DNA of 64,000 bases from Monocercomonoides exilis PA203. Lineage: Eukaryota; Protista; Preaxostyla. The stretch lies in contig LSRY02000042.1 in NCBI GenBank assembly GCA_001643675.2, positions 620,001 to 684,000 of the forward strand, in the 5' to 3' direction. A program made the translations under genes and the position numbers. Under the pieces are notes generated by a model. The model worked only from the letters and a program-made list of their open reading frames with translations, searched no databases and had not been told where the DNA came from. Shown piece after piece: positions 22,009 to 59,000 of the stretch (positions are counted from its first letter, which is position 1; each line of letters starts with the position of its first letter).

Positions 22009-22039
<31 letters not shown>

Positions 22040-28399: not shown

Positions 28400-29758
28400 T
28401 TAAGATCTTCTTTTTTTCACCACAATGACAATCACCACGATTGCAATTGCAATCACGACAACAATCGGAACAACAATTGCAACAATCAATCCAACGTTCG
28501 ATTTCTTTTTATCTTCTGTTGCTGGATCGTTTTTTGGATTATTGTGTTTCTTCACGTATTTCTCAACAATGTCTATTGGTTCTGATTTTGAATCTGCCGC
28601 TGCCTTTATCCACCCTGCATTAGAATCATTGTAATCATTGGCAAACTCAAATGCATTATCTTGATTGCAGAATTCTTCAATATCAGGAGCAATAATGAAC
28701 AATGAAGTAACAGATGAATTTGCTGTGTTTGAGCTGTCAATTTCAAGATTGTTTGCTGATGGTAGCTGCAGTTGTGATGCTGCCTTTGGTAAGTCAATGA
28801 ACAGTGCGCCTGACTTTCCGTTTGGGGCTGTACAAGATTTAAATGTGCATTTTCTTTTTCTTCCAATGGAAACGACAGAAACATTTGAGCGAACCCACAT
28901 CTCCACACCAGCTGTCTCTCCATCTTCTGATTTTGCTTCATTCACTGTTAATCCATCAATTGTAATGTTAGCCGGCTGACTTTCTCTATCAGATATGTAA
29001 ATTGCTCCTCGAATCTCCAAATTCACTTTCTTTATGTCCACGCCATTCAATGATACTTCACTTGCTCCAGAGATATAAAATGGACATGCAGAAAACAAAA
29101 CAGTGTTGTATTCATCTGTGCATGTAACATTTTCGATATAGACTTTTCCTGTGTCCACAACAACCAGTGCATGAACTTTTGGAGTGTTATGCAAATGTTT
29201 TATTTGATCAATTCTTTGTGATTGAAAAGCGGATCTTTCAAATCGACAGTTGTTGATGGATAGTGATGATGAACCCTCTGGAGCATAAATAAGGAATGCC
29301 CAGCTGGGATTAGACATGGGGAAAATAAACTCCAAATATTCATATTCAACAGTGTTTTTGCACTCCAATAAAGACATGGTATTTCCAGGGACTTCACAAT
29401 TAATCTTAACCTCTTCATTATCTTTTCCATCACTTTTGAATCCTCCAATAGTTATTTTCGTCTTATCAAAAGAAATCACTTCTGCATCAAGTGGGGTTGC
29501 ATCTTTAATTACTTTGATTGTCAAACTATCTCCTTCTTGATTCAATTTTGACAAGGCATTTGAAAAACTGTTCACTGCTTGATCAACTGAAGAACCATCG
29601 TTCCGTGCTCCTCCGCTTTGTCTAACATAAACTTCAGTCAAGCCAGAGTTTTCAATTTCTTGAGTGAGCACAAGCACAGTCGCAATAAAGAGGAAAGTAC
29701 TTTGTTGCATTATTGATGATGTTCTTTTCTCTCGGTAGCAATAGATCTTTACTCTCAT
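28400..29758 (-). CDS. Type I membrane surface protein with probable right-handed beta-helix ectodomain
   Basis: Signal-like N-terminus (MQQSTFLFIATVLVL); VYVRQSGG..NDGSS, INNCRF and FKSCTAPNGKSGALFI beta-helix-type motifs; C-terminal TM GLIVAIVVPIVVVIAIAIVVIVIVV followed by KKRRS. Confidence 0.85.
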   Translation of the reverse strand: MRVKIYCYREKRTSSIMQQSTFLFIATVLVLTQEIENSGLTEVYVRQSGGARNDGSSVDQAVNSFSNALSKLNQEGDSLTIKVIKDATPLDAEVISFDKTKITIGGFKSDGKDNEEVKINCEVPGNTMSLLECKNTVEYEYLEFIFPMSNPSWAFLIYAPEGSSSLSINNCRFERSAFQSQRIDQIKHLHNTPKVHALVVVDTGKVYIENVTCTDEYNTVLFSACPFYISGASEVSLNGVDIKKVNLEIRGAIYISDRESQPANITIDGLTVNEAKSEDGETAGVEMWVRSNVSVVSIGRKRKCTFKSCTAPNGKSGALFIDLPKAASQLQLPSANNLEIDSSNTANSSVTSLFIIAPDIEEFCNQDNAFEFANDYNDSNAGWIKAAADSKSEPIDIVEKYVKKHNNPKNDPATEDKKKSNVGLIVAIVVPIVVVIAIAIVVIVIVVKKRRS

Positions 29759-36938: not shown

Positions 36939-38144
36939 ATGACATCTCGCAAGCTCTTTTACAAGAATGCCGATCTCAAGGATCAGACCATCGTTATGCG
37001 TGTGGACTTTAACGTGCCACTGAAGGCAGATGGAACAGTTGACGATCCCGCACGTATTCATGCAGCTATTCCCACCATCAAGCACATTTTGTCAGTTGAG
37101 GGAACAAAGCTGATTCTTATGTCACATCTTGGTCGCCCAGATGGAAAAGTTAAGCCAGAGATGTCACTGCGCCCCGTTCTTCCAGTGTTGGAAAAAGAAT
37201 TGGAAGGAAAATATGTTGTCAAATTCAGCCCTGATTGCCAAAAAGCAGAAGCTGATGTTGCAAGCCTGAATGTACATGAAATCCTTCTTTTGGAAAATCT
37301 TCGCTTCTACGCTGCTGAAGAGAAGAACGTTGCCGAGTTCGCTCAGAAACTCGCATCATACGGAACATTCTATATCAACGATGCCTTCGGAACAGCTCAT
37401 CGTGCTCATGCTTCAACTGAAGGTATCACCAAATACTTCCCAGGAAAATGCGCATGCGGTGAATTGATGGGATTGGAAGTTAAATTCCTTGATGGAGCAA
37501 CTTCAAATCCAGTCCGCCCATTTGTTGGAATTCTTGGTGGAGCAAAGATCTCTGACAAATTGAATGTTGTCAGAAATCTCGTCCAGAAAGTTGACAAACT
37601 TATCATTGGTGGAGGTATGGCTTACACCTTCATCCGCGCCCAAGGAAAAGAGGTCGGAATGTCTCTCATGCAAGCTGATAAACTCCGCATGTGCGCTGAT
37701 CTGTTGAAGGAATACGGAGACAAGATTGTTCTTCCAATTGATGCTATGTGCTGCGAGAAAGTTGACTTCAAAGGCCGCAAATGCTCTGAACCAGTCCCTC
37801 ATTCAATGGATGACATTCCAAGCAACATGGAATGCGTTGATATTGGTCCAAAAACAATGGAACTCTTCACTGACATCCTTCGCACAGCTAAAACCGTTGT
37901 CTGGAACGGACCAATGGGTGTGTTCGAGATTGAGGAATTGTCAAGAGGTACCTTCCACATTGCAAAAGTTCTTGCTGACATCACAAAGGAAGGAGCAATC
38001 ACCATTGTTGGAGGAGGTGACTCAGCATCAGCTGTCTTGAAGAGCGGTGTTGCTGTGTCCCACGTTTCAACAGGAGGAGGAGCTTCACTCGAATTGTTGG
38101 AAGGAAAGAAACTTCCAGGTGTTGAAGCTCTTACTGATGCATAA
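36939..38144 (+). CDS. PGK: Phosphoglycerate kinase, intronless
   Basis: RVDFNVP, SHLGRP, LLENLRF, NDAFGTAHRAHAS, GGAKISDK, WNGPMGVFE, GGGDS and HVSTGGGASLELLEGKKLPG motifs. Confidence 0.98.
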   Translation: MTSRKLFYKNADLKDQTIVMRVDFNVPLKADGTVDDPARIHAAIPTIKHILSVEGTKLILMSHLGRPDGKVKPEMSLRPVLPVLEKELEGKYVVKFSPDCQKAEADVASLNVHEILLLENLRFYAAEEKNVAEFAQKLASYGTFYINDAFGTAHRAHASTEGITKYFPGKCACGELMGLEVKFLDGATSNPVRPFVGILGGAKISDKLNVVRNLVQKVDKLIIGGGMAYTFIRAQGKEVGMSLMQADKLRMCADLLKEYGDKIVLPIDAMCCEKVDFKGRKCSEPVPHSMDDIPSNMECVDIGPKTMELFTDILRTAKTVVWNGPMGVFEIEELSRGTFHIAKVLADITKEGAITIVGGGDSASAVLKSGVAVSHVSTGGGASLELLEGKKLPGVEALTDA

Positions 38145-38410: not shown

Positions 38411-38913
38411 AATTTATTCAATATTTTATTAATTATTTTATCTTTGGCAATATTTTCACAATTGATTATAATTTCTTTGTCCATTCCATTTTTTCTATAT
38501 GCTGCTTTTTATTTATCAGACTACCGATTTCTTCTTAAGCAGTAAATGAAGTAGTTATTTTTTGAAGTTTTTAATTTGCACTTATTCTATTGTCTCTATT
38601 TAACCTTTCACCAAATATATTAAGTACTTTGACAACAAGTTATGTAATGGAAATAAAGCATTTTTATTAAATCATTGTAATAAACATGTTATCAGAACAT
38701 AAAAGAATAAGAAAAATTAAAAGAAAAGAAATAAAAATGTTGAACAAAATAATAAAACTTTTGGATAACAATTAATATCACAAGATGAGATAGAATGATA
38801 ATATTTCATAATAACACAAAAGAAAATAAAACATAGTGAATAGCAACAATTCAATCAGCACATTTGAAGTTGTGTGAAATGAGCATCTATCCATTCTACG
38901 CTAAAGAAGGCTC

Positions 38914-41900
38914 TCATTTCTGTTTAATAATTGCTTTTGGAACATAACCAGATTTGCCATCATTTTTGACAACATAAAACCATCCGTCTTGATTCTCATT
39001 GATAAACATCACATTTTCTCCCTTTTGCACACTCACGTCGCTGTTGCTCTTTGCTGTGTAGTCAGAAAGCGCCTAAAATGGAGTATTGATTTATCATTTA
39101 ATTTGATTTCAGTTTTTCATTTTAGAAAATTATTTGTAATAAAATAAATAATCAACGTAAAAATTTCAAATGAAAAAAAATATTGCATTAAATAAAGTGA
39201 ATCAAACCTGTCCGTTCACAAGCTCTGCATATTCATCCTCTTCGTCGTCGTCTTCTTCTGGTTCCTGTTTGCTTTTGCTTTCTTTTTCGCGCTTTTCCTT
39301 TTCCATTTTCTCTCTTTTCTCTCTCTCTTCTTTCTCCTTCTGTTCTTTTGCTTTCCTCTCCTTCTCTTCTCTTTCTCTCTTCTCCATCTCCTCCTTCTCC
39401 TTTTTGTCTCTCGAACTCTTAAACAACCCTCCCTTCTCTTTCTTTGCTCCTCTCCTTCTTTCCATCTGCCTTTTTGCCTCCATCCTTCTCTCTGCCTCAA
39501 TCCAACATGCTGAAATAAGAAAGGCAGCTTCTGTTTCTTGTTCAACAAGCTCCTTTTTCAGGCTCTCCATCACCCTTTTCGAACTCACTCTCCGTTTGTA
39601 GTCCTTCCACGTTGCACAAATCAATTGCACCCCCCGCTTTTGCCACATCTCCCTTTCAGCTTGCTCTTTCTCTCTCTTTTCCTTCTCCTCTGCCTCTCTC
39701 TGCGCTTTCTTTCTCTTCTCCATTTCCGCTTTCGCCTTTTGTCTATTCTCGCGACTGCTCCACGCCAAAGATATCAGCGTGGCTGAATCCTGTTCGTCTC
39801 CTTCGTTCATCGACCTCCAATCTTGCATGTCGCTTTCGGCATCTTCGCGCACATTCTTCGCAGTCCACAGACGAGAGATCAATGCAGCAGCTGCTTTCAT
39901 TTTCTCTGTTGCTTCTTCCTGTTTCTGAGCAAATGCTATCGATGATGAAATCTTCTGTCTTTTGCCTTGCCATTTGTATGATATGAATTTGGCTGAATCA
40001 ATCTGCTTATTGCGTTCTTTTTCATTACGGCTTGTGAGTTCTTCCAAAGATGCTTGATAAGACAAATGGCTCATCCACTTCTTCATCATTTCTTCTGCTG
40101 CCTTTTGTTCTATTTGTGCTAGCATTTCTCTTCTTTGAAGAAGAACTGTTTTTCCATCATTTGCTTTTGCTCTTTCTGCCCACAATGAACAAATAAGATT
40201 AATTGACTCAATTTGCGTCTGCTTCCATTTTGATCGTCTTTCATTCAAATGATTCAATGCGCCAACTTCTTCATTATGATTTCTCCATTTTTGAGAGATG
40301 ATTCCTGCACTTTCTGCTTCTTTCTTTTCGTCTTCCTTTCTTTTCTCTTCCATCTCCATCTTAGCCTTCTCGACTGTCTTCATCTCTTTCCATTTTGTTG
40401 CGATTATTGCTGCTGACTCGATTTCAACTTGTTCATCCTTTTCTTTTCTCTGCTTCATTTCTTCGATTCCTTTTCTTCGCATTTCACAATTCTTCCATTC
40501 AGATGTAATAACAATTCCTTTATTCTTCTCTTCTTCTTCCCACTCATTTTTCCTTTGTTTCATTACCTTTTCTCCTTCTTTTCTTTTCTCCATATTTCCC
40601 CACCACATTAACATCATTTTTGAAGCTTCAATTTCTTTCTTTTCGTTTGCCATTCTTCTGCCTATGATTTCTTCTTTTGCATTTCTTCTTTGTATTTCAT
40701 TCCTCCAGTCTTTAGTTATTTGTGCAGCTTTATGCTTTTCCGCTTGATCTTCTTCGTCTCTTCTTCTTTCGAGTTCTTTGGCAGAATACCTTTGGATCAG
40801 CAAATTTGCATAGCGTTGACTCAACACACTGCCTGAATAGAATCTTCTTTCTTTGTCTTTGTCCAATTTCTGTTGTAACACAGATTGAGCAGAATGTCTT
40901 TGACTCATCTTCTTCCATTGATTTGACAGCAAAGCTGCTGATTGAGTTTCTGTCTCAAATAATTTGCTCTTATTTTGCTTTGTGATTTCTGCGGCTTTTC
41001 GTCTTTGTATCAAATTGTTCATTTGACAAGTTATAATTGAAGCTTGTGTTTTTTCTTCCGCTTTCACATTTTCTCTCTCCTTTTCCATTCCTTCTTCTCC
41101 TTTTCTTCTTTCGATTGCATTCATCCATTGCCTCCCGATAACTAATGCTGCTTCTTTTTCGATGTTATCATTTTCTTTTCTCTTTTCCGCAATAACTCTT
41201 TCAGAGTTAGTTCTCATGTTCATTCTTCCAATGTGCTTAGCAATCAACTTTGCTGATTCTAATTCCAATGCCATTAATTCTTCTCTCCTTTTCCTTGCGT
41301 TCTGTTCTGCTTTTCCTCTCAACTGAACATCACTCCATTTTTTGGAGATAAAATCAGCTGAATTCTCTTTCTCCTCCTCCCAACTGCCAACTTTATCAAC
41401 AAACATCACTTTTCTTGCCTTTTTCTTGAGTAACACATTTCTGTAGCTGTTTGATATGACTGCTGCCATTCTGCTTTCAAGTGCTTCATTTTCTTCCTTT
41501 TTGATGTTCATCGCATTTTTTGCATTATTTCGAGAAATGGTTGATTCCCACATTTGACTTATCATTATCGCTGATTGTTCACGTGCTTCATTGCCTTCAG
41601 ATACTCTTTCGAACAATATTTGCTTTGACTTCTGTCTTTGTTCTGTGTTCATCCAATGCTTGCTGATTAATGCTGCTTCTCTTATCTGCTTCTCAAAATC
41701 TTCTTTTCTTTTGCTTTCTGTCTGTTCTTTGGCATAATTGACATTCATCTTTCTTCTCCATGTCTCTGCAATTAATGATCCAACTTCTCTCTCTTTCTTT
41801 TCTTGCTGCATTCTCTTTCCATTCATCTCTTCTTGCGAACGAATCCGACTTATTCTTTTTGCCCAGATCTTCGAAATGATGAATGCAGACAGCAGCCTTT

Positions 41901-44900
41901 CTTCATCGTCCTTCTGCTCATTCAGATGCAAAGTGTCTAAGGCATCTCTTCGATCCATCACATTCAACCAGAATTCGCTTATTAGCAATGCTGACTCTCT
42001 TTGGTTGTCAATATATTTCTCTCTCAGTTGTTTCATCTCATTTTTAGCTTGTTCTCTTTGCAAGTAATTCTGCTGTTGTGATTTGATGAATTTTGCAGCT
42101 GATATTTCCTCTGAAAGAAGGGTGCCTGTTTGCTCCAGCATTCTTTCTTTTGCTTTGTTTCTGACAACTTTGTTTGAATATGCCTCACTTATGATCTTAG
42201 CAGCTTTCGCTTCTTCCTCTTTGTTCTGTTCTTTCTTCTTCAAATATTCTGTTTGAGATTTTTGTCTCAAAATTGCTTTTTTCATTGACTTTTCAATTAT
42301 GCTTACAGCGTTAATCTCTCGAAGCTCACATATTCTGCGTTCTGCTTCATTTCTTTGATTGACTCTTGCCCAATACTCACTCAACAATATAGCTGCTTTG
42401 CTAATTCTATCGTTGTATTCATTTCTTTTCTCTTCCAAATATTCTTTTGCCTTCTCACGATTCATTTTCCTCCTCCATCCATCAGATATAAGCAATCCTT
42501 GAGTGATTTCAATGATTTCCTGCTTCTCCCTTTCCTTTGTCATTCTCTCTCTTGACTTGTCACGTTCATTCTTTGCAGTCCAAATGCTGGAGATGAAATT
42601 TGCTGATTTTGCTTGAGTAATTCTGTCTTCTTCTTTCTTTTTGTTCATTTCCGATTGGCTGGATTGCCTTTCATTCATATTCACCCACCATTTCTCAATT
42701 AAAACAGCAGATTGAATAAGATTGTTGTTGTATTCTTGTTTGTGCTGCTCATAAACTTTCATTGCTTCGTCTCTCTTTGTCTTTTTAGCCCATCCAATTC
42801 CAATTTGCTTCGCTGAGGAGAATTCAGCTGCTGAATGATTGCCTGATTGCATCATTAACACTTCCTTTGCTTTGTTTCTGGAGATCCGGTTGACAAAAGA
42901 CTGATAAATTGTTCGAATAGCTTCAATTTCTTTGTTTTTCACTTCTTCCATCAGTTTTGTGTGAATGATTTGAGCTTTTAGTTTCTGTGTGAGTGAAATC
43001 CAGTGAGTTGAAATAAAAGCAGCAGAATTTTGCTCCTTTGAATTCTGTTCATTCTGCAAAGCTTCTAATTGTTGTTGTGCAAATTCTCTATTTGTCTTCC
43101 TCTGCCACATATTTGTTATATTCCATCCAGCATTTCTTTCTCTTTCTCCTTGTACCTTTGCTTTTCTTTGCAGTTGCTCATTCGATTGCATTCGTATTGT
43201 TGAGTTCATCCATTGCGATGAAATATAACTGGCTGATTCATTTCTGCTTATCCTATCACTTTCCTGCCTTTGTTGAATAACATTCTGACTGTTAATTCTA
43301 TCAACCATGTTTAATCTTCCTCTCATAATCAGTTTAGCAGATGATATTTGCTTCATTTCATCCTCTTTAATGTGCTTCTCCTTCATCTCCATCGCTACAT
43401 CTCTGTTTTCCTTCTTCCTCCATCCAACACAGATAATTGAAGCTGCGTGTATTTCTTCTGTCAAAAGCCCTGTTGACAGCTCAGTCACAGTCATCTTTGC
43501 TTTCTCTCTTGTTTTCATGTTGGAAAAGGCCAATTGAATCAACTTAGCTGCATTTCTTTCCTTTTCGTCTGCTTCCTTTTGCAATCTAATCAATTCGGAA
43601 CATGCAAAATTGCGTGTTTTTGCATTATTCAAAGCAAGAAGAAGGATATTTGCGGAATATTTCTCGTTTTCTTTCTGCTTTTCTCTTCTATTCCACATTT
43701 CTTTTTCAGATATTTCTCTTTGTTTGCTTTTCAACCAGTCGTTTATAACAAGACTTGCTGATTCTTTTTCTTTGTTCTCCCACTCAATTCTCAAATTGCT
43801 CATTTCTTTCTCAGAACTCCTTCTCTTCATCGTCAATCTCCAAAAATGAATGATTTTCTTTGTTTCTTCAATCTCTTCCTTTTGTAACACATCCATTCTT
43901 CTTCTCATTTCTTCTGTTGCTTCCAACCTGCACTTGAATTCCTTCAATTTGTTTGATACAATCAACGCTGAATTCTTTCTGTTTTCTTTATCTTCTTCTC
44001 TTCTCCTCTCAAATTCCTCTTTCTTTTTTTCTCTTTCCATTTTGTCTTCCCATTTCACAGAAATCTCTTTTGCTGCTTTTCTCTCTCTCATTTCATCACC
44101 CATGCTCAACTCTTCCTTCATCTGCATCGCTTCCTCTCTTTTCAGTTGATTTCTCCTTTGTTTTGTTATAAATTCAGCAGATTTCTCTTCTTTTATTTTG
44201 TTTTCTGCTTCTTTTTCTGCTTTCGCATGAATCGCTTTTCTCCTCTCAAACATTCTAACTAAAGAAAGAGAAACCAAAATGGACGAATTTATTTGTTTAG
44301 TTGTGTCTTCATCTTGTTTGTGCTTTATTTCATTCTGTGCATCCAATCGAGTTGAATACCCTTCCCATTTGCGAGAAATGACTTCTGCACTCTCTGCTTC
44401 TTTCTCTTCATTTGCCTTTCTCTTCTCTTCCATCATCATTCGAGAACATTCAACTGTCTTCATCTCTTTCCATTTCTTTGTTATTATCTCTGCTGATTCT
44501 TTTTCATCTTTTTCATTCTTTTCTTTCCTCATCTTCAGTTCTATTTCTGCTCTTCTTCTCATCTCACAATCCATCCATTTCATGTTGATAACACCTCCTT
44601 TTCTCCTCTCCTCTTCTTCCCATTCGTTTTTCTTCTCTTCCAAATTTCTTTCCCCTTCTCTTCTCTTTTCCATGTTCCCCCACCACAACACCATCAATTC
44701 CACTGCTTCTGCTTCAATCTTGACACATCCTGTTTTCTTTTGATACATCATATTCGAAGCATCTTTCTTGTCTTTGTAGTTTTGAAGAGCTTTTTGAATG
44801 ACTTCTGCTGCTTCTTTCTCTTCCTCCTGGTTTATTTTATTTCTGTTGTCATATTCTTCTTTGGACTGAGTAACCAACACGAAAAGATTCCATTGTTTTG

Positions 44901-47900
44901 AGAGAATAGAAGCTGAATACTTTTCCTTTTCACTCCATCTCTCTCTTTTTTCACTCAAAACATCTTTTGATTCTCTTCTCCTCAGCATATTTGCCCATCC
45001 ATTTACAATCACATTCAATGAAGAAATAACTTTTTGTCGATTTTCTTCTCTTCTTTCTTCCAACTCTTCTTCTGCTAATTCTCTCCTTTGTTTATCCTTC
45101 CACGAAGCAGAAATAAGAGAAGAAGCATATTCTTCGTCTTCCTCTTGTTTGACTTTCAGTTCCTTTATGATTTCACTCGCCTCTCTTTTCATCTTCAGCT
45201 TCTTCAATCCATCAGCAATGAACATCATTGCAATAGCCATAATTCTGTCTTCTCTTCTCTTCCTCATCTCCTTCCACCCTTCCTCCCTCTTCTCCTTCTC
45301 TCTCCACTCCTCCATCACCCTCATTGCACTTTCGATTTCCCTTCTCTCTTCTTCCCTTCTCCTCTCCTCCATCTCCTTCTTCGCTTCTTCCGATGCCTTC
45401 TTCGCACTCCATCTGCTTAGTATCCTTTTTGCTGCCTTTTTTTGCTTAGCTTCTTTTATCTTCTGCAGATGTTGTGTCGTTATAAGCGAAAGATGATCCA
45501 AACGGCTCTTTCTGGCGGCTTCTGATGGAGACAGAGGAATTTGATGCTCTTCTTCTTTCTCTCTTTCTTCTTTTCCTCTTTCTTCTTCTTCTCTTTCAAT
45601 TCCTTTTTCTTCTTCCTTTTTATCATCAATTTGCTTAATATTTGGTGTTTTCACTCCAGACAATTCATTTTGTATGCTCAAAGAAGTAATTGTATTGTCA
45701 TTTTCCTTTGGATTTGGCTGTATCAACAGTGAGCTGTTTGAAAGATGTAGCATTCTAGCGACTGATGGACAGTTCATCAGAATTGGCGAGAGAAGAGGCT
45801 GTGGAGGAACAATATCTTCATATTCTTCGTCAATTTTGAGCTTTTCTGACTTTGCTTGCTTTTCTTTCTTTTCTGATTTAAAATTTCTTGTTTTGTTTGT
45901 ATTTTCTGATGTTACTTCGTTTTCTATTAGAATGTTAGTGTTTTCTTCCTCCAAATGTCCATTGCTCATTTCAGTCTGTCTTTTAACCTCTTTCTCGCTC
46001 TGCACAAAAAAAGACTCTTCTGAAAGATTTCCTTTTGCTTCTTCGATTTCTTCATTTTTGAATTCTTTCACTTTCTCTACTTCTTCTTCTTTTGTTTCTT
46101 CATCTGTTTCACTTCCACTCATTTTGATTTTTGTTTCTTCTTCATAACCATCTTTTGATTCAACACTTCGATTTTCCAAATTTTCATTAGCTGTTTCAAC
46201 AATAGTGGTACCTCTTCTTTCATCATCATCATCTTCTTCTTTTTCTTCCTTTTCTTCTTCTGCTTCATCTTCAACCATTTTATCTCTTTTCTCCTTCTTC
46301 TCCTCTTCCTCTTCTCCGTCATCATGTTGATGATGCATTTCAATTTCTTCTTCTCTTCCTCTTTCTATTTCATCATCTTCTCCTCCCTTTTCTTCTTCCT
46401 CTTCTTCTCTTCTTCCTTCTTGTTCTTCTTGTGTGCTATCTGAAGTATCTTCATTGATATCCCCATTTTGTGACAGAGGAGATGAGATGCTCAAAGAAGA
46501 AGGCGATGTTGGAGAAAGAACATTGTTAGAAAGAGATGAAGAAGGAGAAGAAGGAGAAGGAGAAGAAGAAGAAGAAGAGGAGGAGGAGGAGGAAGAAGAA
46601 GTTATTGTTAATGCGGAAGCGAAATAAGGTGGAGGAGGGGTGGAGAAAGAGGAAGGAGAAGCTAAACAAGAAGAAGAATGATGAGAAGGCAGAGGCGTTT
46701 GCTCTTCTGTTGAAACGAGTGTGGAATCAGTTGAATTCTCAGTCGAATGAAGAAGAGAAGAAGATGAAGAAGAAATGTTTTGATTGGATGAAGATAAATT
46801 AGAGGAAGAAGAAGAAGAGGAGGAGGAAGAAGAGGAAGAAGAAGAAGAATTCTGCTCAAATGAACCAGATGGAGAATGAGGAGTTAAAAGAGGATTCACA
46901 TTGACTTCATTTTCTCCACTGCTATTTTCTGTTCTTTCTTCATCATCATCATCTTCATAATTATTATTATGATTTTTGTTATTATTGTCTTCTTCTTCTT
47001 CTTCTTCTTCCTTTTCCTCTTCATCTGCTTCTTCTGTTCCTTCATCTTCTGCTTGTGTGTTATCTTCAGTTGGACAACTCATTTGACTCATGTATTGCTG
47101 AAATATCTGAGTGCCCACAACAGATGGATCAGGTGTTGAGGCAAAAGACGATGAAGACGAAGAAGAAGATGAAGCTGAAGCTGAAGCAGAAGCAGAAGAA
47201 GAAGATGATGAAGAAGCAATAGAATGAGCATTCATTCCATTGGTATAAACATCTTCATCATCATTATCATCTCTATTTCTGGATGTATTTTGATGAGAGA
47301 AATATTCAGTCAAGGAAGATGTGAAGAGGGCATTGGGAGAGCTTATCAATTGAGGCATTTGACTTTCTGATTGCTCAAAAGAAGAAGAAAAAGATGATGA
47401 TGATGATGATGAAGCACATTTCAATGGAGATATTTCAGAGGAAAAAGAAGATGAATCAGAAGATACTTCATTCATGTTGTTCATATCTTCCTTTTCGCAC
47501 ATTTCATATTTTTCGCCTCTTTCGATTGCTTTCATTGAATCATCGTCTGGTTCTCTTATTCCTTTCTCGTCATTTGGAATGAAGATGACTTGTGTGCTGG
47601 ATATCATCGAATTCTCTTCGGCTGCTTCTAAAATGGAACACGAAGAGGAAGAAGAGGAAGAAGCAGAAGCAGAAGCAGAAGCAGAGGAAGAAGAAGAAGA
47701 AGAAGAAGAAGCAAACACATTTGAATAATATTCCTCGCTGCTCATATCGATCATCTCGATGGCATCAACAAGAAATGTGTCATTTGGCGGGGGAGTCTTA
47801 AACACATGATGCGAATAGCAGCATTCCTCTTCCATTTCTGTGGAAGAGGAAGAAGCTGATGCTGAACAATTGCCATCTTCTTCTTCTTCTTCTTCTTCTT

Positions 47901-50900
47901 CCCAACATGTTTGTGTGCAATCTTCAATAAGTTCATCTTGTGGAGCAATTTTGACTGTATCTTCACTTTCAGCAGAGATTTCTGTTTCTTCTTGTTGTTT
48001 CTTCTTCTTCTTGCGAATGACACAGACACAGAGGATGATGATAATTACACCCAGAACAAGAGAGATAACAAAGAAGACAGAAAAGCAGATGATAAAGACA
48101 GTTAAATATCTTGCTTGGTTGGCACTTTTGATTGAATCAGAGACATTGAAAGGGAAAAATACAGAAGATGATTGAACTTGAGGATCACCAAAAAGCAAGG
48201 CAATTTGAGAAGATGAGGACAAATCCTGAGGAAGAGATGAAGAAGGTATAACAGAAACTATCTCATTCTCATTGATTGAGGAAGCAGAATCAACAGGAAA
48301 TGCTTTCGAAGATTGTTTGGCTTTGCTTGATGAGGAGAAGATGACAAAGAACAAATTGCATGGAATCAGAACAGATCCTGTTATCGTTATCTTCAAATTT
48401 TCTCCTTTTCCTCCTCCATTTCCTTCTTCTTCTTCAACAGCAACAGAATCGATCTTTGGAATGAACAAAGGCGATGCTCTTTCCTGTGCCACTCCTTTCA
48501 TTTCACACCCTCTGCTCAGCATCCACAAAGACGTCCCATTTTCCTTCCCGTCTCCTCCCTTCAGACTCGAAATGTCCACAACACCTGAATCAGAACACAG
48601 CACATTCCTTCTCACTGAAGAATAGCCTGAAACTTGAGGACTGTTCTGAAGAAACTCTCCATTTTCTATCTGAAGACTCCCTCCTCTCACGTCGATGCCT
48701 CCTTTCGACGAATTGGCTATGGTTGCATTCTGAATGACAGCAGCACAGCCAACTAAGCACATTATTGACCCATTCCATTCACACATTGAATTGTCTTCAT
48801 TTGATAATGATGACGACGACGATGATGATGGTATGACATTTGATTCAATAAGAGATTCTGCCTTGTCAGCAACGCCGTTCAAAACAGAATTAATAAGCTT
48901 CACATTTGTCGAAGAGAAAGCAAAACATATTTTTGTTGAGATAATCTTAAAAGGCCAAAGAACGAAGTCTTTTATCTCCAAAGTGCCTCCCTTTGCATTC
49001 ATCACTGAGCAATTGAGTTGGACAGCGTCTGCTTCTTGTTCACATTCGCAGTTCTCAAACTTGAATGTTCCGCTATTCATCAGAATAACACCATCTGCAA
49101 CGCCTGTTGTGCCAAACTGTTTCGTAAGCAGAAAATGAACTCCAGAAAATACACAGTTGTCTCTCAAATACAAGACAGCAGAGGAAGAAGGAGCAAAAAT
49201 CGTGTCCAAAGTGAGTTGAGCCTTCACTTTGACTGAAGATGAGGCATAACCAGCGTCAGAGCACACAGTCAAGTCGGAAAGAGAAGAAGAAAGTAGCAGA
49301 GGAGCATCGTGGTCAATCACAATGATACCGTGTGTGCCAGACGAGAGATGCTTGATGCCTTCACAGAGAGACTTGCATGGCTCGTCAAAGGGACCGCAGA
49401 TGCGAAGCGAGGATTGGGCTGAGTTTTGAGAGGAGACGAATATTTGGGTGTCTGTGTAGTAGTTGATGAGGGTATAGATGTCTGTGTATTTGTTCACATT
49501 CACTAAATCTGTGGCAAAGATGGCATTATTCCTGTCAAAGAGCGTTCGACTGAAGTTCATCTGAAAGATGTTGCTGCTAATTTGTGCTTCGATTGAATGG
49601 CAGCTGATGAAGATATCTCGTCCCAGCCCTGCTTCATTTGATGTGAAGATGACATCTTTGAAGAGCAAAGGAAGTTGAGGAATTGGATTTGGTATGCCTG
49701 CCGAGGGGTCAGACACACAGTCAACGAACATCCCTCCTCCACATCCGCCTCGCATTGAGGCAGAGCATTTGGCGAAAGAGCTATTTCTGATTGAAAGCTG
49801 CCCATCTGTTGGCACAGCAAAATAGCTGCTGCCTCCATCAAGTGAGCCATGTGCACTGCAGACGTCCCACGTGCTGTTGGAGACAGAACACTCAAACTGT
49901 GGCTGGAAAGGTGTTTGCAGCACAGCACAATTGCTGGACGATTGAACGATTGATTGAAAAGTTGTGTTTGAGATCGACAGACTCAGCGCTGCATTCCTTT
50001 TATGATTGTCAAATGTGTCTTTGTTTGATGAATGAGCATTCGAAATAGAAAGTAAAGACAAATCCTGCAAATTGATGTACAGAAAATTCGAAGAAGTGAG
50101 TGAAATTGAAGTTAGCGCATCTGAACAAAAAAGCACATTGTACATTAAGCTCATTGATTCAAAAGTTGTGTCAATGACGCTCAAAGAACCAGAAGCAATT
50201 TTTATCAAAAAATACTCCAAAACTTGTGATGAAGAAGAGCATTTGACAGAACATCCATCCAATTTAACTTCTCCATTTGAAGATGACAACAAGATTGAAT
50301 GGGGAGGTGTGAATAATGCAGGCAAAGTTAATTCAATGCATTGCAAAGAAAAGCTGTTGCTACTGCCAAGAATATAATCTAACGAATCAACAGAGCCAAG
50401 AGTACTTTCCAATAACAAAGCAGATGTTTCATTTGTTGCTGATGATTTGACAACATAATTTGTGACATCGCACGCATCTGCCAGTGTTGTTGAGTCCACC
50501 ACAAACATTTCCACTTGAGAAGGAGGTGGCGAAGAAATGACATGTTTCATTCCCATCCAGAAGGTGAAGCAAGGAATAGCAGCACTTCCACACCCAACTA
50601 CATCCGCTCCTGTTTCTGCAGATAAATAAATGGCAGCAGAACTGTAAGGAATAAAAAATGCAGCTAAGTTGATTCCGTTTTTGAATTTTTCGTTGTCTGC
50701 ACCAACAAATCCATTGGCATCGTCAACCCAATTTGTGAAACTGATGTTAAAATGAGTAGGATTTGCAGTGACATTCAGCTCAAAACACCAAAAGTACATG
50801 TTCTTCCCGCAGAAAGCGCTGTTATTTGAAAAATGAATGTTTGAGAAGACGAAATTCTCAGAATTATCAGCGCAGTGCAAATGCAAAAACCCTCCTTTTC

Positions 50901-53900
50901 CTGTTGTGGTTGAGCAGCCACAAGAAGAGACAGATGTTTGCACTGAATCAGATATCTCTGAAATGTCCAATGAGCCTGGATTTTTTAGCTCCAGCTCCAA
51001 AACACCACCTTTTGCACTGGATGAAGACTGAACGTGTTGGAATGAGCAGTTGGTGAATGAAAGGTTGTAGTCCAATATGGAAGAAAAGAGACAAGGAAAA
51101 GATGAGTCAGAGTTTGTAGATAGATTGGTGAATGTGCTGTTTGTGAAAGCTCGTGCTGATTGTGGTGTGGCTGCTATTTCGGGCACTGCAGAAATGACAG
51201 GCCCTGATTGCACAGTCATAAATGATAGAGCGTTGCTGTCATACACCATGTCCACTGAATATGCAATCGAAATAGGCGAATCGAAGAATCTCAAAGGAGC
51301 AACAGAAATGCCAACTGTGGAGTGCTCAAAAGTCAAATGACCAGTCCGCACAGAGAGAAGAGCAAATGCCACATCTGCATTCTGCTCCTGTCCCTGAATG
51401 GAACAGAAAGAAATGCTGATTGAAACTCCTTTTGAGCAAAGCAATGCTGTGAACGCACTTTTAAAAGTAGGCGGAAAGCGGATGCTGACCATTTCAAATG
51501 ATGTGGTGCCATCGTTTGTGAGAACAGCAGCTTCTCTTTCCTCACTTGAGATTGATTGGCTGAGATACAACTTCGACTGCTGTGCTCCTGATGATGATGA
51601 TGATGCTGAAGGGGCAGCAATCACGTGCTTGGATAACTGCAGCGAAATGTTCGATTGCACTTCTTCGACAATCAGCATCTTCAGCTCCGTCCCTTCTTTT
51701 TTCCACATCTTCTTCACAAACGCCACTGTCTGACACGGAAGAGGTAGATCTCCGCATTGGATGACATCCTGCCCTGTGGAATTCACATGCACCACATCTC
51801 TTCTGCGCGACCGCAGCAAGTCCAACAGGTCAGTTCCAGAAGAATACACACCGCTGTCTTCTCCTTCCATCCCACTATTCTCTGGTTGGTATTGATCAAT
51901 GTCAAAATTGAGAGATTCGAAGCTCACAGAATCCAAAAGGTTTTTGCAGATCAGATAGAAGTTTTTTCCTATTTGTGCTGTGTTTGCTATGAAAGAAGGC
52001 TCGGTGAGTGACCAGTTATGAACAGAAGAGGAGCGGCAATTAAGGCCAATACAACCTCCCTTTCCAGAAGCTTCCGAGCATCCACAGTTGGAAAAAGAGG
52101 AGTGGTCAATCAGAAAAAAAGAGTGTTCTTCGATGCTCGCACTGCACACACCACCGAAATGGCAGTTTCCGCTCACACAGTTTTTGATGGTGCTGTTGAT
52201 GAAAGTCGCACTCATTGCGCTGTTGGGTTTGAATAAGAGAACACTTGACTGAGCGCCATGGTTCATGATTGAAGAGAAAAAGCAGCTGGAGAATACAACA
52301 CCAGATTCCGATGGAGATGGAGATGAAGATGGAGATGAATATGAAGATGGAGATGAAGATGAATATGAAGATGGAGATGAAGTTTGGCTGTTTGTTGCTC
52401 TGCTTGTAGCACAATCAACAGTACAGAATGATTCAGCTAGAAAAGTTAGGTCACTCACGTTGACTGCATCAAAAGTGCAACACGAAGCTGCCTGTGTGAA
52501 CACAAACATGCTTTTTGAGTTGTCTGTAGCGCCTTGTTGAGAAATGGTGCAATTTGCCATCGAAAACAGGGCAGAAGAGGTGGATGCAAATGTCACTTTA
52601 AATGAGGCTGTTCCTTGAAAGAGGATGTCACAATCAGTGAAAATGGTTGATGTCCCTTTCGTAGACAACACAATATACTCATTTGAATGTGCTGTTATGT
52701 CAAATTTTATGAATGAAAATGCGATTTCTGTGTTGCTTGTGATCAGCCCAGCTGCGTCCAAAGGAAACTCAATAGGAGAAATCTTCAATGCTCCCACTTT
52801 CTTTGGAGATTGACTGCCTAAATAGGAAGTTATTGAAACATCGCTGAGATCAACTGATTTGGCAAGTTCTGATGAATTGATGATTTGTAAGCAGAGTGAA
52901 GGAATAGAAGAAGAAGAAGAGGAAGAGCAAGAGGAAGAAGTATAAGAAGAAGAAGAGGAAGAAGTATAAGAAGTCCTGCTCAATCTCTCCTTCCCACCGT
53001 TGAGTGTGATGCAAGGGCGAGCAAAGCTTCCGCACCACGGGGCATCGCTAAGCCCAGTTGAATCAACAGAAACAGTCGAAGCAGAAAACACAGTCAGAAA
53101 AATGAACAAATCAACGTCTTGTCCAATGAATCTGTCGTTGTCTGAGCCAAAAAGAGAGTTTTCTCTGTTTGAAATGGAAGAGTGGAAGGGAAAAAGGAGC
53201 GGGGTGACTGAAGAGACGAGAGAGGCACAGAAGAGATAGAGATCTCTTCCAATGGATGCTTCGTTGTCTGTGAATGTCAGCTGAGAGAGAGAAAAAAAAG
53301 AGTCAGAAAGAACAGTTGGTTGGGAGAAGGAGATCATCATGGCACCTCCTTTGCCACCTTGTTCAGAAGAAGAGGAAGATGAAGAGGAAGAAGAAGCAAC
53401 ACGACATTTGCTAAAAGAGGAAGAAGAAACAGACAAAACTTGGCTGGCATCTGATGCAGCGAAAGAGAAGCACCCTCCATTTGTTGCTGAAGGAGAAGCA
53501 GAAACAGAAGAAAGATCGAAGAAAGAGCAGTTTGTGATGCTGACTGAAAGAGAAGATGAAGCACTGGAACTGAAGAGACAGGAATATCCACCCACTTCTG
53601 AGCCTGTTGAATTAGTTTCAGAGGAGTTCATTGAGAAAGGTGCAGAAGAAGCTTCGAAGAAGAAGAGAGAGGCACGAGAGATGGATGAGATGTGGATGAA
53701 CGTTCTGTTGAGGGTGAGTGTGCCAGAGGAGATGAAGAACAAGGATGTTGTGACAAGAGGGAAGGAGCTGTCGCTGCTGATGTGTGTTTCATTCAGATGG
53801 ATGGCGCCATTTTGATGAAACAGATAGAAAATGGTGGGAGAAGGAGCAGCACTGGAGTTGTGCACAATCTGAACAGAAAGAACATTCAATGAGCCAGACG

Positions 53901-56025
53901 AGACAGAAAACAAGGCAAGAAGATTATTTGCAGCTGAAGGAGAAGAAGCAAAGCTTCTGATGAGCTGTGTGGTGATGACAGTAGAAAGGGGGTTGTCTTC
54001 AGTGCCTTGCACGCTCACTGTCCTTGTGTCGATGTCTGTGTTCTTTGTCTCGTGTGCGTGTGTGCCAGAGAGGCAGCAAATGACAGCTGGCTGAGGGGAA
54101 GACAGCTTCGTGGCAGAATGTGCCATTGTGCGGCATGGGTAGCGCTGGACAGAGCCACAGGCAGCATCTTCATCGTCGCCATCTGCAGACACATAGCAGA
54201 TTGTGAGTTCAGTTGTGACATCGTCTGCGAAGTGACTGCAAGTGGTGCCATCAAAAGTGCACATTCGCTTGTCTGATCTGTCTGTTGAGAAGCAGGAAAC
54301 GAAGTGTGGATGAGAAATGGACTCTAAAGTGGTGATGCAAACATCGTGGCCACAGGGACTAGAGACGTCTGCACACATACAGCCATCGAAGAGGAAGAAA
54401 GAGAATGTCGTGTGTGTTGTGATTGAGGAGGAGGAGGAAGAAGAATCTGAAAGAGGCTTCCATCTCAATGCTCCGCCGTAGTTGTTGCAGCCACAGCGGC
54501 GGAAGGAGCACTCGCTGAATGTCAAGCCAACTGTGTTGTCTTCAACTGAACAGCCACCGCCATAGAGTGTTGTGATGTTGTTGTCCAGAAATGTTGTCTG
54601 AGAAATGATGAGTGGCGAGTTGCCATCTGTTCCTGTGTGAAAGAGTGAAGATGTTTTGTCTGAGGAGATCGTTTGAAGAGAATGAGATAAATGAATATGA
54701 CGTGAAGATGGCAAGGTGGAATTATGAGATGAAGGTGAAGAAGCTGAAGAAGAAGAAGCAGCAGTAGAAGATAATGCAGATGATGGTAAAGAAGAACAAG
54801 AAACGCAACGAAGAGCTCCGCCTAATCCCTGTCCAAAGCAAGTGGAGAACAAACAGTTTTCAATCTTCAGATTCGCAACTTCTGCAACTTCTATTGCTCC
54901 GCCTGATGTTTTTGAGACGCAAAACGAAAGATTCGAGTTGATCACAGACATCATCTGGATGTTCTTGACAAATATTGCCCCGCCAGCTGCAGAAGAAGAG
55001 ATGCACCGGTCGAATGTGCAGCTCTCAATAGACAGCTTTGCTGTTGGCTTGTCTGCGAGATAGAGAGCTCCGCCGCTTCCTGCAGAACACTCAGAAAAGG
55101 TGCAGAAAGTGAAGCGATGATTTGTGTCTGAGGAGGAAATAACAGTTTGGTTGGTGAAGTGTTTTCGATCATAGACAGCGTTTGAAGCGGAGGCGCAGGA
55201 TTGAAATGTTGAGTTGAAATAATCAATGTTGTTGTGAGGTGCAATGTTTGATATGAAAGATAGTGAATGAGGAGATAAGCATCCTGAGAACAAGGATGCT
55301 TGAACAGAAACTGAAATTGATGACAACCTGGAGCAGTAATCGTTTATGTCTTGAAGATAAGTATGCGATACATTAAAAAATGTGCTGTGTTTAATGTTTA
55401 AGTTGGTGATAGTTGATGATAAAAATGAATAATGAGAATTGGTTAGAATAATAGAATTAATTATCGATGATTCCATATGAAATGAGCAATCAGATGGAAC
55501 GGTCATGGAAGATAATAAAGAACCAGAATTTATTGGACGCGATTGGGGATGATGCATTGAAGGAGATATTCTCACTGAATCAAAAATAATTGATCCTTCA
55601 ATTCTTTTTAAGGTTTTTCCTTCAAAAGGTGATATCTTCATGTTGCAAGAGAATAATGATAAAGAGGATGATGAAAAATGCATGACAAAAATTGTTGAAG
55701 GCTTAGAAGTCAAAGATATCCTTCTGAAACACAATGAAGAATTATCAATTAAAATAATTGAAGATGAATAAATTTCAGTGAGGTTATTGAATTCATGAGA
55801 GATGTTCCTCGTGTATTTAGACACATCTATTACGTTAAACTTTATTTGCTGAAAATGAAGTGAATTATCCTCAGGTTGCTCGCTGAAATCTGTTAAAAGG
55901 TGATTTTTGTTTTTCATGTAATCTTTATTATTTTTGTTGCATTCGCTTTCATCAATAATTTTATTTTCACATGTGCAACTCAAAAAATTACAAAGAAAAA
56001 GAAAAAGAATTATGAATAAATGCAT
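38914..56025 (-). CDS. Giant single-pass membrane protein (~5658 aa): signal peptide, beta-helix ectodomain, TM, 57 x 35-aa IQ-like repeats, C-terminal SH3; exons 56025-39208 + 39072-38914
   Basis: 16.8-kb ORF with GGAI/FxxC and CGxxxxPC modules, a TM at ~48016-48109 followed by RKKKKK, and a repeat rod at ~39470-45440. Phase-0 intron 39073-39207 (GTTTGA...TTTTAG) adds ALSDYTAKSNSDVSVQKGENVMFINENQDGWFYVVKNDGKSGYVPKAIIKQK*. Confidence 0.88.
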
Positions 56026-56060: not shown

Positions 56061-59000
56061 TCATTCAATGATCTGTTCAGTAAACTTCTTTTTCTTTCTA
56101 AATATGTTTCTTAAATTCTGTCTAGAATTTGTTGTTTTAACACTATCCCCTGGGCGATGAAGAGATGACTCAACATCATTTCGAACAGTTTCTTTTGATT
56201 CTTGAATTGGAAATGTATCTGCAGGCTGTTCTATTTCTTGTGGTTCTGTCTGCTCATCTGGTGCAATAGAGCTGTCAGCAATAGCTCTTCCTCTCTGTGC
56301 AAGCTCTTCGTCAATCTGCTGGTCGATGCCAAACCGCTTCAGTCTGCAGCAGGACAATATTCTGTCCCCAACATTGAAAAATGTGATGATGATGACAAAA
56401 ACGATGAGCAAAGGGAAGTAAACAACAAAGCCATCTCCGACAAAAGGCGCCACTTTCATCACGTTGACGACTGTGGAATAGACCATCACAGGCTGCGCAT
56501 CCAAATCGAGCTGAGAATAAGGAGAAGAGAGAGGGGTGTGGAGGAAGACGAGGATGTTCTGGCAGAGAGGGGCAGTGAGCATGGCAGACCAGCCGGCGAA
56601 TGTGAAGAGAGAAGGAGGATCAGATGAGTCAGGGACGAGATGGAGGAAAGAGAAGAGGCGGAGACGAGAGAGAGTGGAGAAAGCAGATAAGGCAAGGAAT
56701 ACGAGGAGGAGGAGGAGGAGGAGGTATTGGACAGGGGTGAAGGCGTGGGAGTGGAGAAGAAGAGAAAGAGGAGATATGTCGAGGGGGATGAACATGGTGA
56801 CCTCTCCCCACACAACCAGAAAGGACAGCAAAGCACACAGAATGGAGAGGATCTTCAGAGAAATGAGAGAAATGGTTGAATACTGAAGATGGGCTGGTTA
56901 GATGGAATAAATGAAGAGGGAATAAAAAAATAAAATAAAATATAAATATGTTTTTTTTGTTTGTTTGTTTGAAATCGAACAAAAGAAATAAGTGGAATAA
57001 AAAGAAATGTTAAATGTTGAGCATAAATAGGGAAAACTTAAAAAAAAAAGTACACCTTTTGCCTTTTGCCAGCCTTGTCCAATGTTTCTGTTCTGATAGC
57101 GGGAGATAGCTTTGTATGAAGTGAGATTGGCTTCGAATTCACTGTGTGAACATATGGAATATTATTGTAACATAATATCAATAATTAAATATGCATTCAA
57201 TAAACATTAAAAAGTCCGAAAAAATACTCATTCACAAAATGGCAGCACAACCAACTAATTTACTGACCAACCAATAAAATAAACTAACTTATAAAATATC
57301 AAAAATAAAAAATTTTTCTTCCTCATTGCACATACTGTTTTTCTTTGATAACATAATATTTCTCTCTCTTCAGCTTCTGCCTCAGCTGACAGAACATTTC
57401 TATTTGCGGATCTTCTTCCTTTCTGCACCTTCTTTTGCTTTCTCCCTCTCTTTTCGCTATTTTCGCTTTTCTTCTGTCTTTTGCCGCATTCTTCTTTTTG
57501 TTGTTGGCCAAATCAATTTTCACTGTTGTCGTATCGCTTGCAACACTAACTGTGCCTATTTCATTGCTATCTTGTCCATTCAGACTATACACCTCTTCTT
57601 CTCCCTCTCCCTCTCCCTCTTCTCTCTCGTCTCCTCCTTCTCTTTCGCTGTCACTTTCGCTTTCATAGTTTGCATCTGGTCTCTCAACATCCTCTTCTCC
57701 TCCAATCATCCTTCCATATTCATCTACAAACACTTCTTCTTCCTCTCCTCCTCTTCCTTCCCTTCCTTCTCTGCTTCTGCTTCGTCTACTCAGCAGCTCT
57801 TCATTCTGTCTGTCTTCTGTGTATTTCTGATGGAAGCGACTTGCCCTGCCATTTGCATCATCATCTGCATATCTTCCATCATTTCCTGTTCTTTGTGAGA
57901 GTGAATCTTCTCTCTTGACTGACTGGTTCTTCCCTTCCTCGTTCCTTCTGGCAGCAAGCGAAGTGACTGATTTCAATGTGCGCTTTCGATGAAAAGAAGA
58001 GAAAGGAAATCGAAAAGAAGAAGAAGATGTGGAAGAAGACGTTGAAGTGGATGAAGTGATAAGAGATGGGCAGTATTGCTGGCAATCCATAAGCTGAGTC
58101 ATAAAGTTTATTCAAATACAAAACACGAAAATAATAGCAAATTAATGTAAAAAAGATTAATTGCTAATTCACTGTTAAAAGATTAAAAATTAAATAATTA
58201 ACAATTGTGAGATGAACTTTTTCATAAAAAATCAAAAAACGATTATTCATTTTGAGCACACCTCTTTTCTAAGCGTGGAAAGATATCGATCATATTTAGG
58301 CTCTTTTTTGTGCTTTTCAATTACTTTGTCTATTTTCTGTTGATGCACATTCCAAAATTCAGTTGAAAAAAAATTATTTTAAATAAAAAAGTTTACAATT
58401 TCGTCCACACCAAGCATGTTTCAGTCAAAGAATTCACATTCTTCGTTATGGAATCAGAGTGCTTTGCAACTAAATACGCATGGTAATCTTGCTGTGCCTT
58501 CAAGTTTGATCTTCGCCAAAGTTTTTTCGGGATATAAATCTTGGATAAAACAAAAGATAAAAAGAAGTATAAAAAAGATCATTCAAAGTAAATGCAAACC
58601 AATCCGACTCCAAGCATTACAATGTACAAGCACATTTGAAAAAATGAAGATATTGCAATGACCAGTTGTTTTACAGAAAGCCTGGAATTTCAATTATGAA
58701 TATAAATTAAAAAAGTAATGCAAAATCAAGTTTCCTTAAAGCATACAAAGATATAACTCCAAATGCAATCAAAAAAATTAAGCCAATAAGTCCAAGAATC
58801 CCCCAGGTGAGGTAAAAGCGGCCATTTCTTTTTAATGAATAAAGCAATTTTTGCTTAAAAGTAAAACCTCCTGAAGAATACCATTCTTTAAAAAAAGGTG
58901 CAATAAGCCTATTTAACAAATTTTTATTCTTTCAAAATTTGCTTTTAAATAATGAATGCATACCAAAGGTTTGCAAAGTTTGTCCAATAAATGATATTCC

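Follow-up and report, generated by a model that had tools for sequence, protein, structure and literature searches.

Architecture of a giant gene in Monocercomonoides exilis

We analysed a stretch of 64,000 nucleotides from the protist Monocercomonoides exilis PA203 (contig LSRY02000042.1, positions 620,001 to 684,000; hereafter the window, whose own numbering is used throughout) and describe here one gene on its minus strand that is predicted to encode a giant, membrane-anchored protein. A single frame at 39202-56025 (-) runs for 5607 codons without a stop and, as an earlier note on this DNA had read it, links a signal peptide, beta-helix modules, one transmembrane helix, a disordered region and a long array of repeats. 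The locus is best explained as a single gene that encodes a type I membrane protein, whose predicted spliced product has 5,658 amino acids (aa) and a mass of ~634 kDa. From the start codon to the stop, all on the minus strand, its features are as follows.

55963-56025, minus strand: start codon and signal peptide (aa 1-21, MHLFIILFLFLCNFLSCTC...), at the first ATG past an in-frame stop; Kyte-Doolittle 2.13
48109-55962, minus strand: ectodomain (aa 22-2639), six predicted beta-helix modules
49474-50658, minus strand: module 5, the modelled module (aa 1790-2184), predicted right-handed parallel beta-helix by AlphaFold2 and Foldseek
48016-48108, minus strand: predicted transmembrane helix (aa 2640-2670), Kyte-Doolittle maximum 3.47
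45457-48015, minus strand: RKKKKK stop-transfer sequence and Ser/Glu-rich disorder (aa 2671-3523), from composition
39445-45456, minus strand: rod (aa 3524-5527), 57 IQ-like units of 35 aa, from a repeat hidden Markov model (HMM)
39208-39444, minus strand: Lys/Glu-rich low complexity and the acidic end of exon 1 (aa 5528-5606), from the translation
39073-39207, minus strand: predicted phase-0 intron, 135 nt, GT...AG
38914-39072, minus strand: terminal exon with a 52-aa SH3 domain (38917-39072, Pfam SH3_1) and the TGA stop (38914-38916)

The openness of this frame stands out against its surroundings. Local GC content is 35-43%, and stops number 25-186 per segment in the remaining five frames. 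Given the local composition, the probability that the frame would be open by chance is ~1e-60 for the ectodomain, ~3e-28 for the transmembrane and disordered part and ~1e-70 for the rod. The 883 codons of the transmembrane and disordered linker contain no in-frame stop, whereas the other two frames have 37 and 79. Sampled words over 38701-48700, a region that spans the junction between transmembrane helix and rod, are found at 87-95% in DNA runs from 2016 and 2022, which derive from the same sample as the assembly, and at 56-68% in RNA runs of a second study, a figure that speaks for presence in RNA libraries and not for continuity.

The earlier note had the SH3 domain added to this frame by splicing. 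The domain itself is canonical: searched separately, as each exon was, the terminal exon matches Pfam SH3_1 at 44 bits (cut-off 22.9, E 1.7e-11) and 152 SH3 chains of the PDB at E <= 1e-3, the best being p47phox (1.5e-11). The splice is a prediction, and the 5,658-aa model is accordingly a predicted join. The proposed intron (39073-39207, GTTTGA...TTTTAG) preserves the frame, has 17% GC and carries seven in-frame stops. Its 135 nt can be set beside a mean intron length of 119 nt in M. exilis, whose poly(A) signals are AAUAAA and AAAUAA (PMC8767320); an AATAAA lies ~245 nt beyond the SH3 stop. Because this exon has just 52 open codons and no Met ahead of them, it could be expressed only by splicing onto the giant frame.

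The ectodomain and membrane anchor belong to a family of receptor-like kinases

The ectodomain consists of an N-terminal GGA[IL]-rich module and five modules with CGxxxxPC caps (at aa 623, 998, 1424, 1812 and 2210), each of ~375-455 aa and joined by Ser-rich linkers. It contains 99 Cys and 40 N-glycosylation sequons. The transmembrane segment at aa 2640-2670 is the only strong internal hydrophobic stretch on the Kyte-Doolittle scale and is followed by RKKKKK, after which aa 2671-3523 form ~850 aa of Ser/Glu-rich low complexity, with trinucleotide Ser/Glu runs and a PPPPY motif at aa 3135.

Module 5 was modelled with AlphaFold2 from an alignment (A2) of 20 paralogues and the protein's own five capped modules, module 5 included. 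The model is all-beta, with a predicted local distance difference test score (pLDDT) of 83.2 and a predicted template modelling score of 0.86, and its top 50 Foldseek matches are all right-handed beta-helices (PL6 lyases, GH87, pectin methylesterases and phage tailspikes), with weak scores (best E 6.9e-4, TM-scores 0.3-0.5). The nearest ESM-Atlas feature clusters are from Preaxostyla (0.96), followed by DUF1565, Chlam_PMP and Beta_helix (0.90-0.94), and Atlas neighbours of the ectodomain module carry PF07602, PF02415 and PF13229. The predicted fold of the modules is therefore that of a right-handed parallel beta-helix, in agreement with what the earlier note had proposed for the ectodomain. 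At the sequence level no Pfam or NCBIfam model, Beta_helix, Chlam_PMP and POMP_repeat among them, scores above its cut-off on the ectodomain; POMP_repeat (TIGR01376) reaches 11.1 bits against a 15-bit cut-off. Like DUF1565 and chlamydial Pmp-type surface proteins, the giant protein combines this predicted fold with GGA[IL]-type turns and a cap at the module start, but it differs from them as a predicted eukaryotic type I membrane protein rather than an autotransporter, and in reaching none of these models.

We further note that the modules have many relatives in the same genome. From 4,603 first-look candidates, a search with module 5 yielded 105 scored paralogous modules (E 1e-32 to 1e-43), almost all inside open frames of 2,000-4,300 aa. 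The modules of the giant protein share 27-31% identity with these paralogues, and the membrane-proximal domain (aa 2409-2624) is the best-conserved part, at 35-50%. Eight sampled paralogues (loci L017-L024) each have a transmembrane helix followed by a tail of 300-470 aa, and in seven of the eight this tail matches PK_Tyr_Ser-Thr, at model positions ~160-258 only. Tyrosine-kinase and tyrosine-kinase-like genes, 332 in number, form the largest gene family of M. exilis (PMC6759080). On these comparisons the ectodomain and transmembrane helix are those of an ordinary member of a receptor-like kinase family with more than 100 paralogues. CGxxxxPC-capped beta-helix modules, membrane-proximal domain and single transmembrane helix are common to both, whereas the place of the paralogues' kinase-like tail, usually ~430 aa, is taken by disorder, rod and SH3 domain, together 2,988 aa (2671-5658 in the spliced model). 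Neither Pfam nor a comparison of paralogue tails with the giant tail (best E 0.09) finds a kinase remnant in the latter. The giant gene is, on this evidence, a family member whose whole cytoplasmic output module has been exchanged.

Two observations on the family stand apart from the giant gene. The kinase match in the seven tails corresponds to the C-lobe; in the ~275 aa ahead of it, a conserved and acidic juxtamembrane region, an N-lobe cannot be seen. Among the annotated M. exilis 'tyrosine kinases', many may be pseudokinases or have N-lobes that are very divergent. In the eighth tail (L021) the kinase model finds nothing, and tail swapping may for this reason be common in the family. A second beta-helix gene within the window (28400-29758, minus strand) has the KKRRS tail that the earlier note had ascribed to it, and encodes 452 aa with a signal peptide and one transmembrane helix. 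Its product is a single-module relative of the ectodomain family and has a weak Psg1-like match at the transmembrane end (E 7.8e-5, below cut-off).

The rod is an array of 57 diverged units with a strict 35-residue period

A repeat HMM finds 57 units in aa 3524-5527, and 51 of the 56 spacings between them are exactly 35 aa (the rest are 33, 29, 36 and 25+26), which bears out the count of 57 repeats, mostly of 35 aa, made from the first inspection of the DNA. The consensus is [DN]EEKExE[SA]Ax[LIV]I[ST]xxWxNxxxRxx[AS]xxx[ML]xx[RK][RK]EE, and the conserved columns, counted over the 52 units of the 35-column repeat alignment (A1), are E5, [SA]8, A9, [LIVF]11, I12, [ST]13, W16, N18, R22, [AS]25, [ML]29 and [RK]32-33. 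Across its 2004 residues the rod has no Pro, 55 Trp and 38% Glu, Lys and Arg together. Six units modelled together form one uninterrupted helix of 208 residues (pLDDT 90.5). From this model and the absence of Pro, the rod is predicted to be a continuous alpha-helix ~300 nm long at 0.15 nm per residue, and both this length and the idea of a tether from the surface to the interior, as put forward in the earlier note, are supported.

Mean identity between units is ~21%, and Tandem Repeats Finder detects no 105-nt period in the rod DNA, a result that speaks against a recent origin from a DNA satellite. Given this low identity and the missing DNA repeat, the exact 35-residue spacing must have been kept through long divergence, and the repeat spacing itself appears to be under selection. 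There is no seven-unit super-repeat: mean identity by lag is flat (0.20-0.24), with faint bumps at lags 6, 7 and 13, and the sole clear higher-order copy pairs units 8-11 with units 47-50, at lag 39.

Hydrophobic columns are limited to positions 9-29 of the unit, where they lie on two faces of the helix, and the hydrophobicity profile has only a weak harmonic at 3.5 residues. These two properties indicate discrete patches with charged spacers rather than a coiled-coil seam, and on the weakness of the harmonic we set aside a continuous coiled coil. Each unit comprises a hydrophobic and basic patch of ~21 residues with the geometry of an IQ motif (A-x-x-I-[S/T]-x-x-W-x-N-x-x-x-R) and a Glu/Lys/Arg spacer of ~14 residues.

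The rod units resemble IQ motifs

The likeness to IQ motifs also appears in profile searches. Against 1.84 billion representative proteins, the A1 HMM returned four matches only. The best three of these are ASPM-like, with 10-14 reported Pfam IQ stretches (E 1e-66 to 1e-186), and two of the three also have the ASH domain of ASPM. The alignments are in register, A9-I12-W16-R22 falling on A-x-x-I-Q-x-x-W-R-x-x-x-x-R of true IQ motifs. Comparison by hhalign with a canonical-IQ profile (A4), built from motifs picked by regular expression and independent of A1, gives a probability of 86% (P 4.8e-6), with columns 3-23 on columns 3-23. The sole PDB profile match of the repeat is an IQ peptide of rdgC (E 0.11), and the nearest named Atlas clusters of the rod are IQ proteins (0.88, a similarity at the level of a lead only). 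At the level of profiles the rod is similar to true IQ arrays, and in register with them.

Both the rod and the arrays of ASPM/Asp have tens of tandem motifs of the calmodulin-site type along one long helix. In ASPM-type motifs, however, the Gln is invariant, the Gly is common, the spacing is 23-27 aa and Pfam IQ is reached, whereas the rod has Ser/Thr and Asn at these positions and a strict 35-aa period with a charged spacer. ASPM-type proteins moreover carry ASH and CH domains and are without a transmembrane helix, an ectodomain or an SH3 domain. We thus regard the units as IQ-like, on their sequence outside the IQ family proper, with a putative EF-hand partner; from the IQ-like core, the ligand to expect is an EF-hand light chain and not actin. 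A complex prediction for one rod unit with the C-lobe of calmodulin (residues 42-114, encoded by one exon at L045:630-971) scored 0.04 and counts neither way.

Although the genome is without myosins, EF-hand_7 is matched in it above cut-off at least 28 times. Its calmodulin gene (C56:154,240-154,775, in locus L045, G000:C56:153800-155200) has an intron of ~90 nt after the first EF-hand, with donor GTATGG and acceptor TTATAG.

Related rods elsewhere in the genome

With the repeat HMM, weaker arrays of the unit were found in three other genes of the genome. The first (G000:C40:531373-535947, plus strand) encodes a soluble protein of 1,524 aa with ~26-30 units, most of them exactly 35 aa apart; it consists almost wholly of Glu/Lys/Arg-rich units in which the Trp is often replaced by Met, and its N-terminal 300 aa are pure (EEEERxKK)n. 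The second (G000:C14:2255838-2264795, plus strand) is a frame of 2,986 aa with ~28-36 N-terminal units (AAxxIxxxWKExKxxxEAK) at a spacing of 35-47 aa, beyond which come a long disordered part rich in Ser, Pro and Gln and stretches rich in Glu and Lys. The third, on contig C1 (L013:2898-7571), has 1,557 aa, few rod-type units and six PPPP[IL]P/APPPP motifs in an acidic Ser-rich tail, and it is pure speculation that it could be a ligand of SH3 domains or profilin. None of the three has a transmembrane helix, a beta-helix ectodomain or a nearby SH3 domain. Judged from these genes, the rod is a module of the lineage, and the giant gene is the sole membrane-anchored, SH3-tipped form found in the genome.

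A proposed decorated rod as a link between surface and interior

We tentatively favour, as somewhat short of probable, the reading that the giant protein is a surface receptor or adhesin tethered, via a helix decorated with EF-hand proteins, to a ligand of its SH3 domain. The six extracellular beta-helix modules would bind a target at the cell surface. In the cytoplasm, the ~430-aa kinase-like tail of the family would have been replaced by the acidic, Ser-rich disorder of ~850 aa, the rod and the SH3 domain. A single light chain of the EF-hand class, be it calmodulin, a centrin or some other small protein of that class, may occupy each patch of the rod, and the tail so decorated would form a stiff rod, possibly tunable by Ca2+. 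This rod would couple binding at the surface to a proline-rich SH3 partner up to ~300 nm inside the cell, and through it to whichever cellular structure the tether serves.

Several observations weigh against this reading. Pfam finds no family at E <= 1 on the whole tail, so that the gathering score of IQ (PF00612) is not reached; a genome scan with PF00612 gives 44 matches, none of them in the giant gene, and only two of the 52 units weakly touch a family of the IQ type (IQ_SCN5A_C, E 0.022). Full matches to IQxxxRGxxxR or [FILV]Qxxx[RK]Gxxx[RK] are absent from the rod, and IQxxx[RK] occurs only twice. The hallmark Gln is mostly Ser/Thr and the Gly is replaced by Asn: over the 52 units, the IQ columns hold Ile/Leu/Met/Val in 52, Gln in 2, Ser/Thr in 31, the first Arg/Lys in 14, Asn for Gly in 22 and the distal Arg/Lys in 44. 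The database matches of A1 include a large composition-bias term, and in the reciprocal direction the rod reaches only 14.4 bits with a canonical-IQ HMM, which recognises ~4 units in it; the best of 20 shuffled versions reaches 7.2 bits. EF-hand binding by the rod is itself a prediction, and the architecture is known from one genome.

The subthreshold Pfam result and the weak reciprocal search also suit another account, in which the rod is a bare single alpha-helix of the ER/K type or a self-associating spacer that carries no light chains and sets the distance between membrane and SH3 domain, the IQ-like pattern being a convergent amphipathic motif for self-packing or for some other partner. 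The charged composition, the lack of Pro and the one continuous modelled helix fit this account as well; we think it doubtful. The one conserved Trp per unit would be left exposed to solvent, as would the Ala, Ile, Leu and Met that line two sides of the helix, the weak heptad (3.5-residue) harmonic disfavours packing along a coiled-coil seam, and the repeat HMM retrieves IQ arrays and not the far commoner ER/K or coiled-coil proteins. In a further account the rod would be a centrin scaffold of the Sfi1 type anchored to the plasma membrane, in which Ca2+ would shorten or stiffen the filament as in Sfi1-centrin fibres and ciliate myonemes. Sfi1, its human form hSfi1 and the giant Sfi1-family proteins of ciliates share with the rod a long proline-free helix, a conserved Trp per repeat, a near-constant repeat length and the expectation of one EF-hand protein per repeat. 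The wide and strict spacing is closer to human Sfi1 (mostly 33-mers) than to IQ arrays of 23-26 residues (PMC2173958), and the organism is flagellated, with many small EF-hand genes. The Sfi1 consensus AX7LLX3F/LX2WK/R (PMC2173958) is nevertheless unmatched: [FL]xxW[KR] occurs at none of the 55 Trp, LLxxx[FL]xxW does not occur and LxxxLxxW triads number only three, so that neither the consensus nor the L-x3-L-x2-W triad characterises the rod. The Pfam Sfi1 model (PF08457) has no match in the giant protein (a scan of the genome with it matched nothing, not even the positive controls, and counts neither way), and the repeat HMM retrieved IQ proteins, not Sfi1 proteins. We therefore rate a membrane-bound Sfi1 scaffold as improbable. 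The known proteins of the Sfi1 family are, to our knowledge, not membrane proteins.

A nebulin-like actin ruler, with one actin subunit per 35-aa unit, was the analogy drawn in the earlier note, and it fares worse. Nebulin and nebulette do share with the giant protein repeats of ~35 aa and a C-terminal SH3 domain, and M. exilis has actin (PMC6759080). The SDxxYK motif is, as that note had itself remarked, absent from the rod (SDxxYK 0, DxxYK 0), Pfam Nebulin is not matched (0 families at E <= 1), the seven-unit super-repeat is missing and the conserved core fits IQ geometry instead; nebulin, moreover, is without a signal peptide, an ectodomain or a transmembrane helix. These differences leave the analogy very improbable indeed. 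A different kind of doubt concerns the gene model, since the ectodomain with its transmembrane helix and the rod could be separate products (through internal polyadenylation, an internal start or unseen splicing), the SH3 exon could be unused, or the junction could be an artefact of assembly. The junction of giant frame and SH3 domain is a predicted splice and the single transcript is likewise predicted from sequence, which also counts against the favoured reading. A typical family member ends ~430 aa past the transmembrane helix, soluble paralogues that carry the rod alone exist, and annotation work on the M. exilis genome reports some gene models as wrongly fused and others as wrongly split (PMC8767320). 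Against this, an ectodomain-only product would meet no stop codon for 2,900 codons, the 883-codon linker has been kept open (P ~3e-28), the DNA runs of 2016 and 2022 cover the junction region at the level given above and the SH3 exon is inexpressible alone. We consider an error of this kind quite improbable, though not so remote as the actin ruler.

The reading of a receptor tethered by an EF-hand-decorated helix can be carried further, in a form that we think unlikely as it stands. M. exilis has no myosin head domains (PMC6759080), and its family of IQ-like rods with a 35-aa period might, together with calmodulin or centrin, form Ca2+-responsive filaments. The giant gene would then encode the membrane-anchored member, which would couple an extracellular adhesin array directly to such a filament and, via its SH3 domain, to the cortex or the flagellar root apparatus, and so serve non-actomyosin transmission or generation of force.

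Novelty and implications

Database searches returned no protein that matches this layout, in collections that are mostly length-filtered and without oxymonad proteomes. No homologues of the rod, of its C-terminal piece or of the ectodomain module alignment came back from a length-filtered collection that apparently lacks the M. exilis proteome. The statement in the earlier note that no described protein is known to have this combination thus holds for the collections searched, and most of the blanks behind it are weak for the reasons just given. All parts are of known kinds; what no searched collection contained is their combination, an IQ-like period held strictly at 35 aa, and anchoring in the membrane.

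If ~57 EF-hand proteins are indeed bound, the giant protein would be the first membrane-anchored filament of the IQ or Sfi1 type known to us. With a unit length kept to the residue while the sequence drifted, it is a natural test case for how the spacing of light chains sets the stiffness of a decorated helix and its geometry. The gene also shows one way in which the largest family of M. exilis genes diversifies, in that the ectodomain is conserved and the whole cytoplasmic output module behind it is swapped. Monocercomonoides exilis lacks mitochondria as well as myosins, and alternative cytoskeletal solutions would be illuminated by any mechanical connection of surface and interior that Ca2+ regulates. 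Should the rod be a bare spacer, the gene would still encode an unusual giant receptor variant, of much narrower interest.

Neighbouring genes and other features of the window

The giant gene is closely flanked. Upstream, at 56061-58102 (minus strand), lie the exons of an LMBR1-like membrane protein, and the stop of its last exon is 35 nt from the giant gene's ATG; the promoter and 5' untranslated region of the giant gene must therefore overlap the 3' end of this neighbour. Downstream, an intronless phosphoglycerate kinase gene (36939-38144, plus strand; PGK, E 1e-136) is convergent with the giant gene, and an identical protein is encoded on a 1,331-nt Logan contig from run ERR12411576.

Farther away, a plus-strand frame of 2,469 aa (19293-26702) has extreme low complexity, with poly-Ser, Pro-rich, (EK)n and His-rich runs, and no Pfam match; at 24-26 kb of the window the GC skew is strong (-0.58). 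At 1890-2969 (minus strand), an open reading frame of 359 aa carries an ISXO2-like DDE transposase domain (DDE_Tnp_IS1595, E 1.5e-19), here in a eukaryotic genome.

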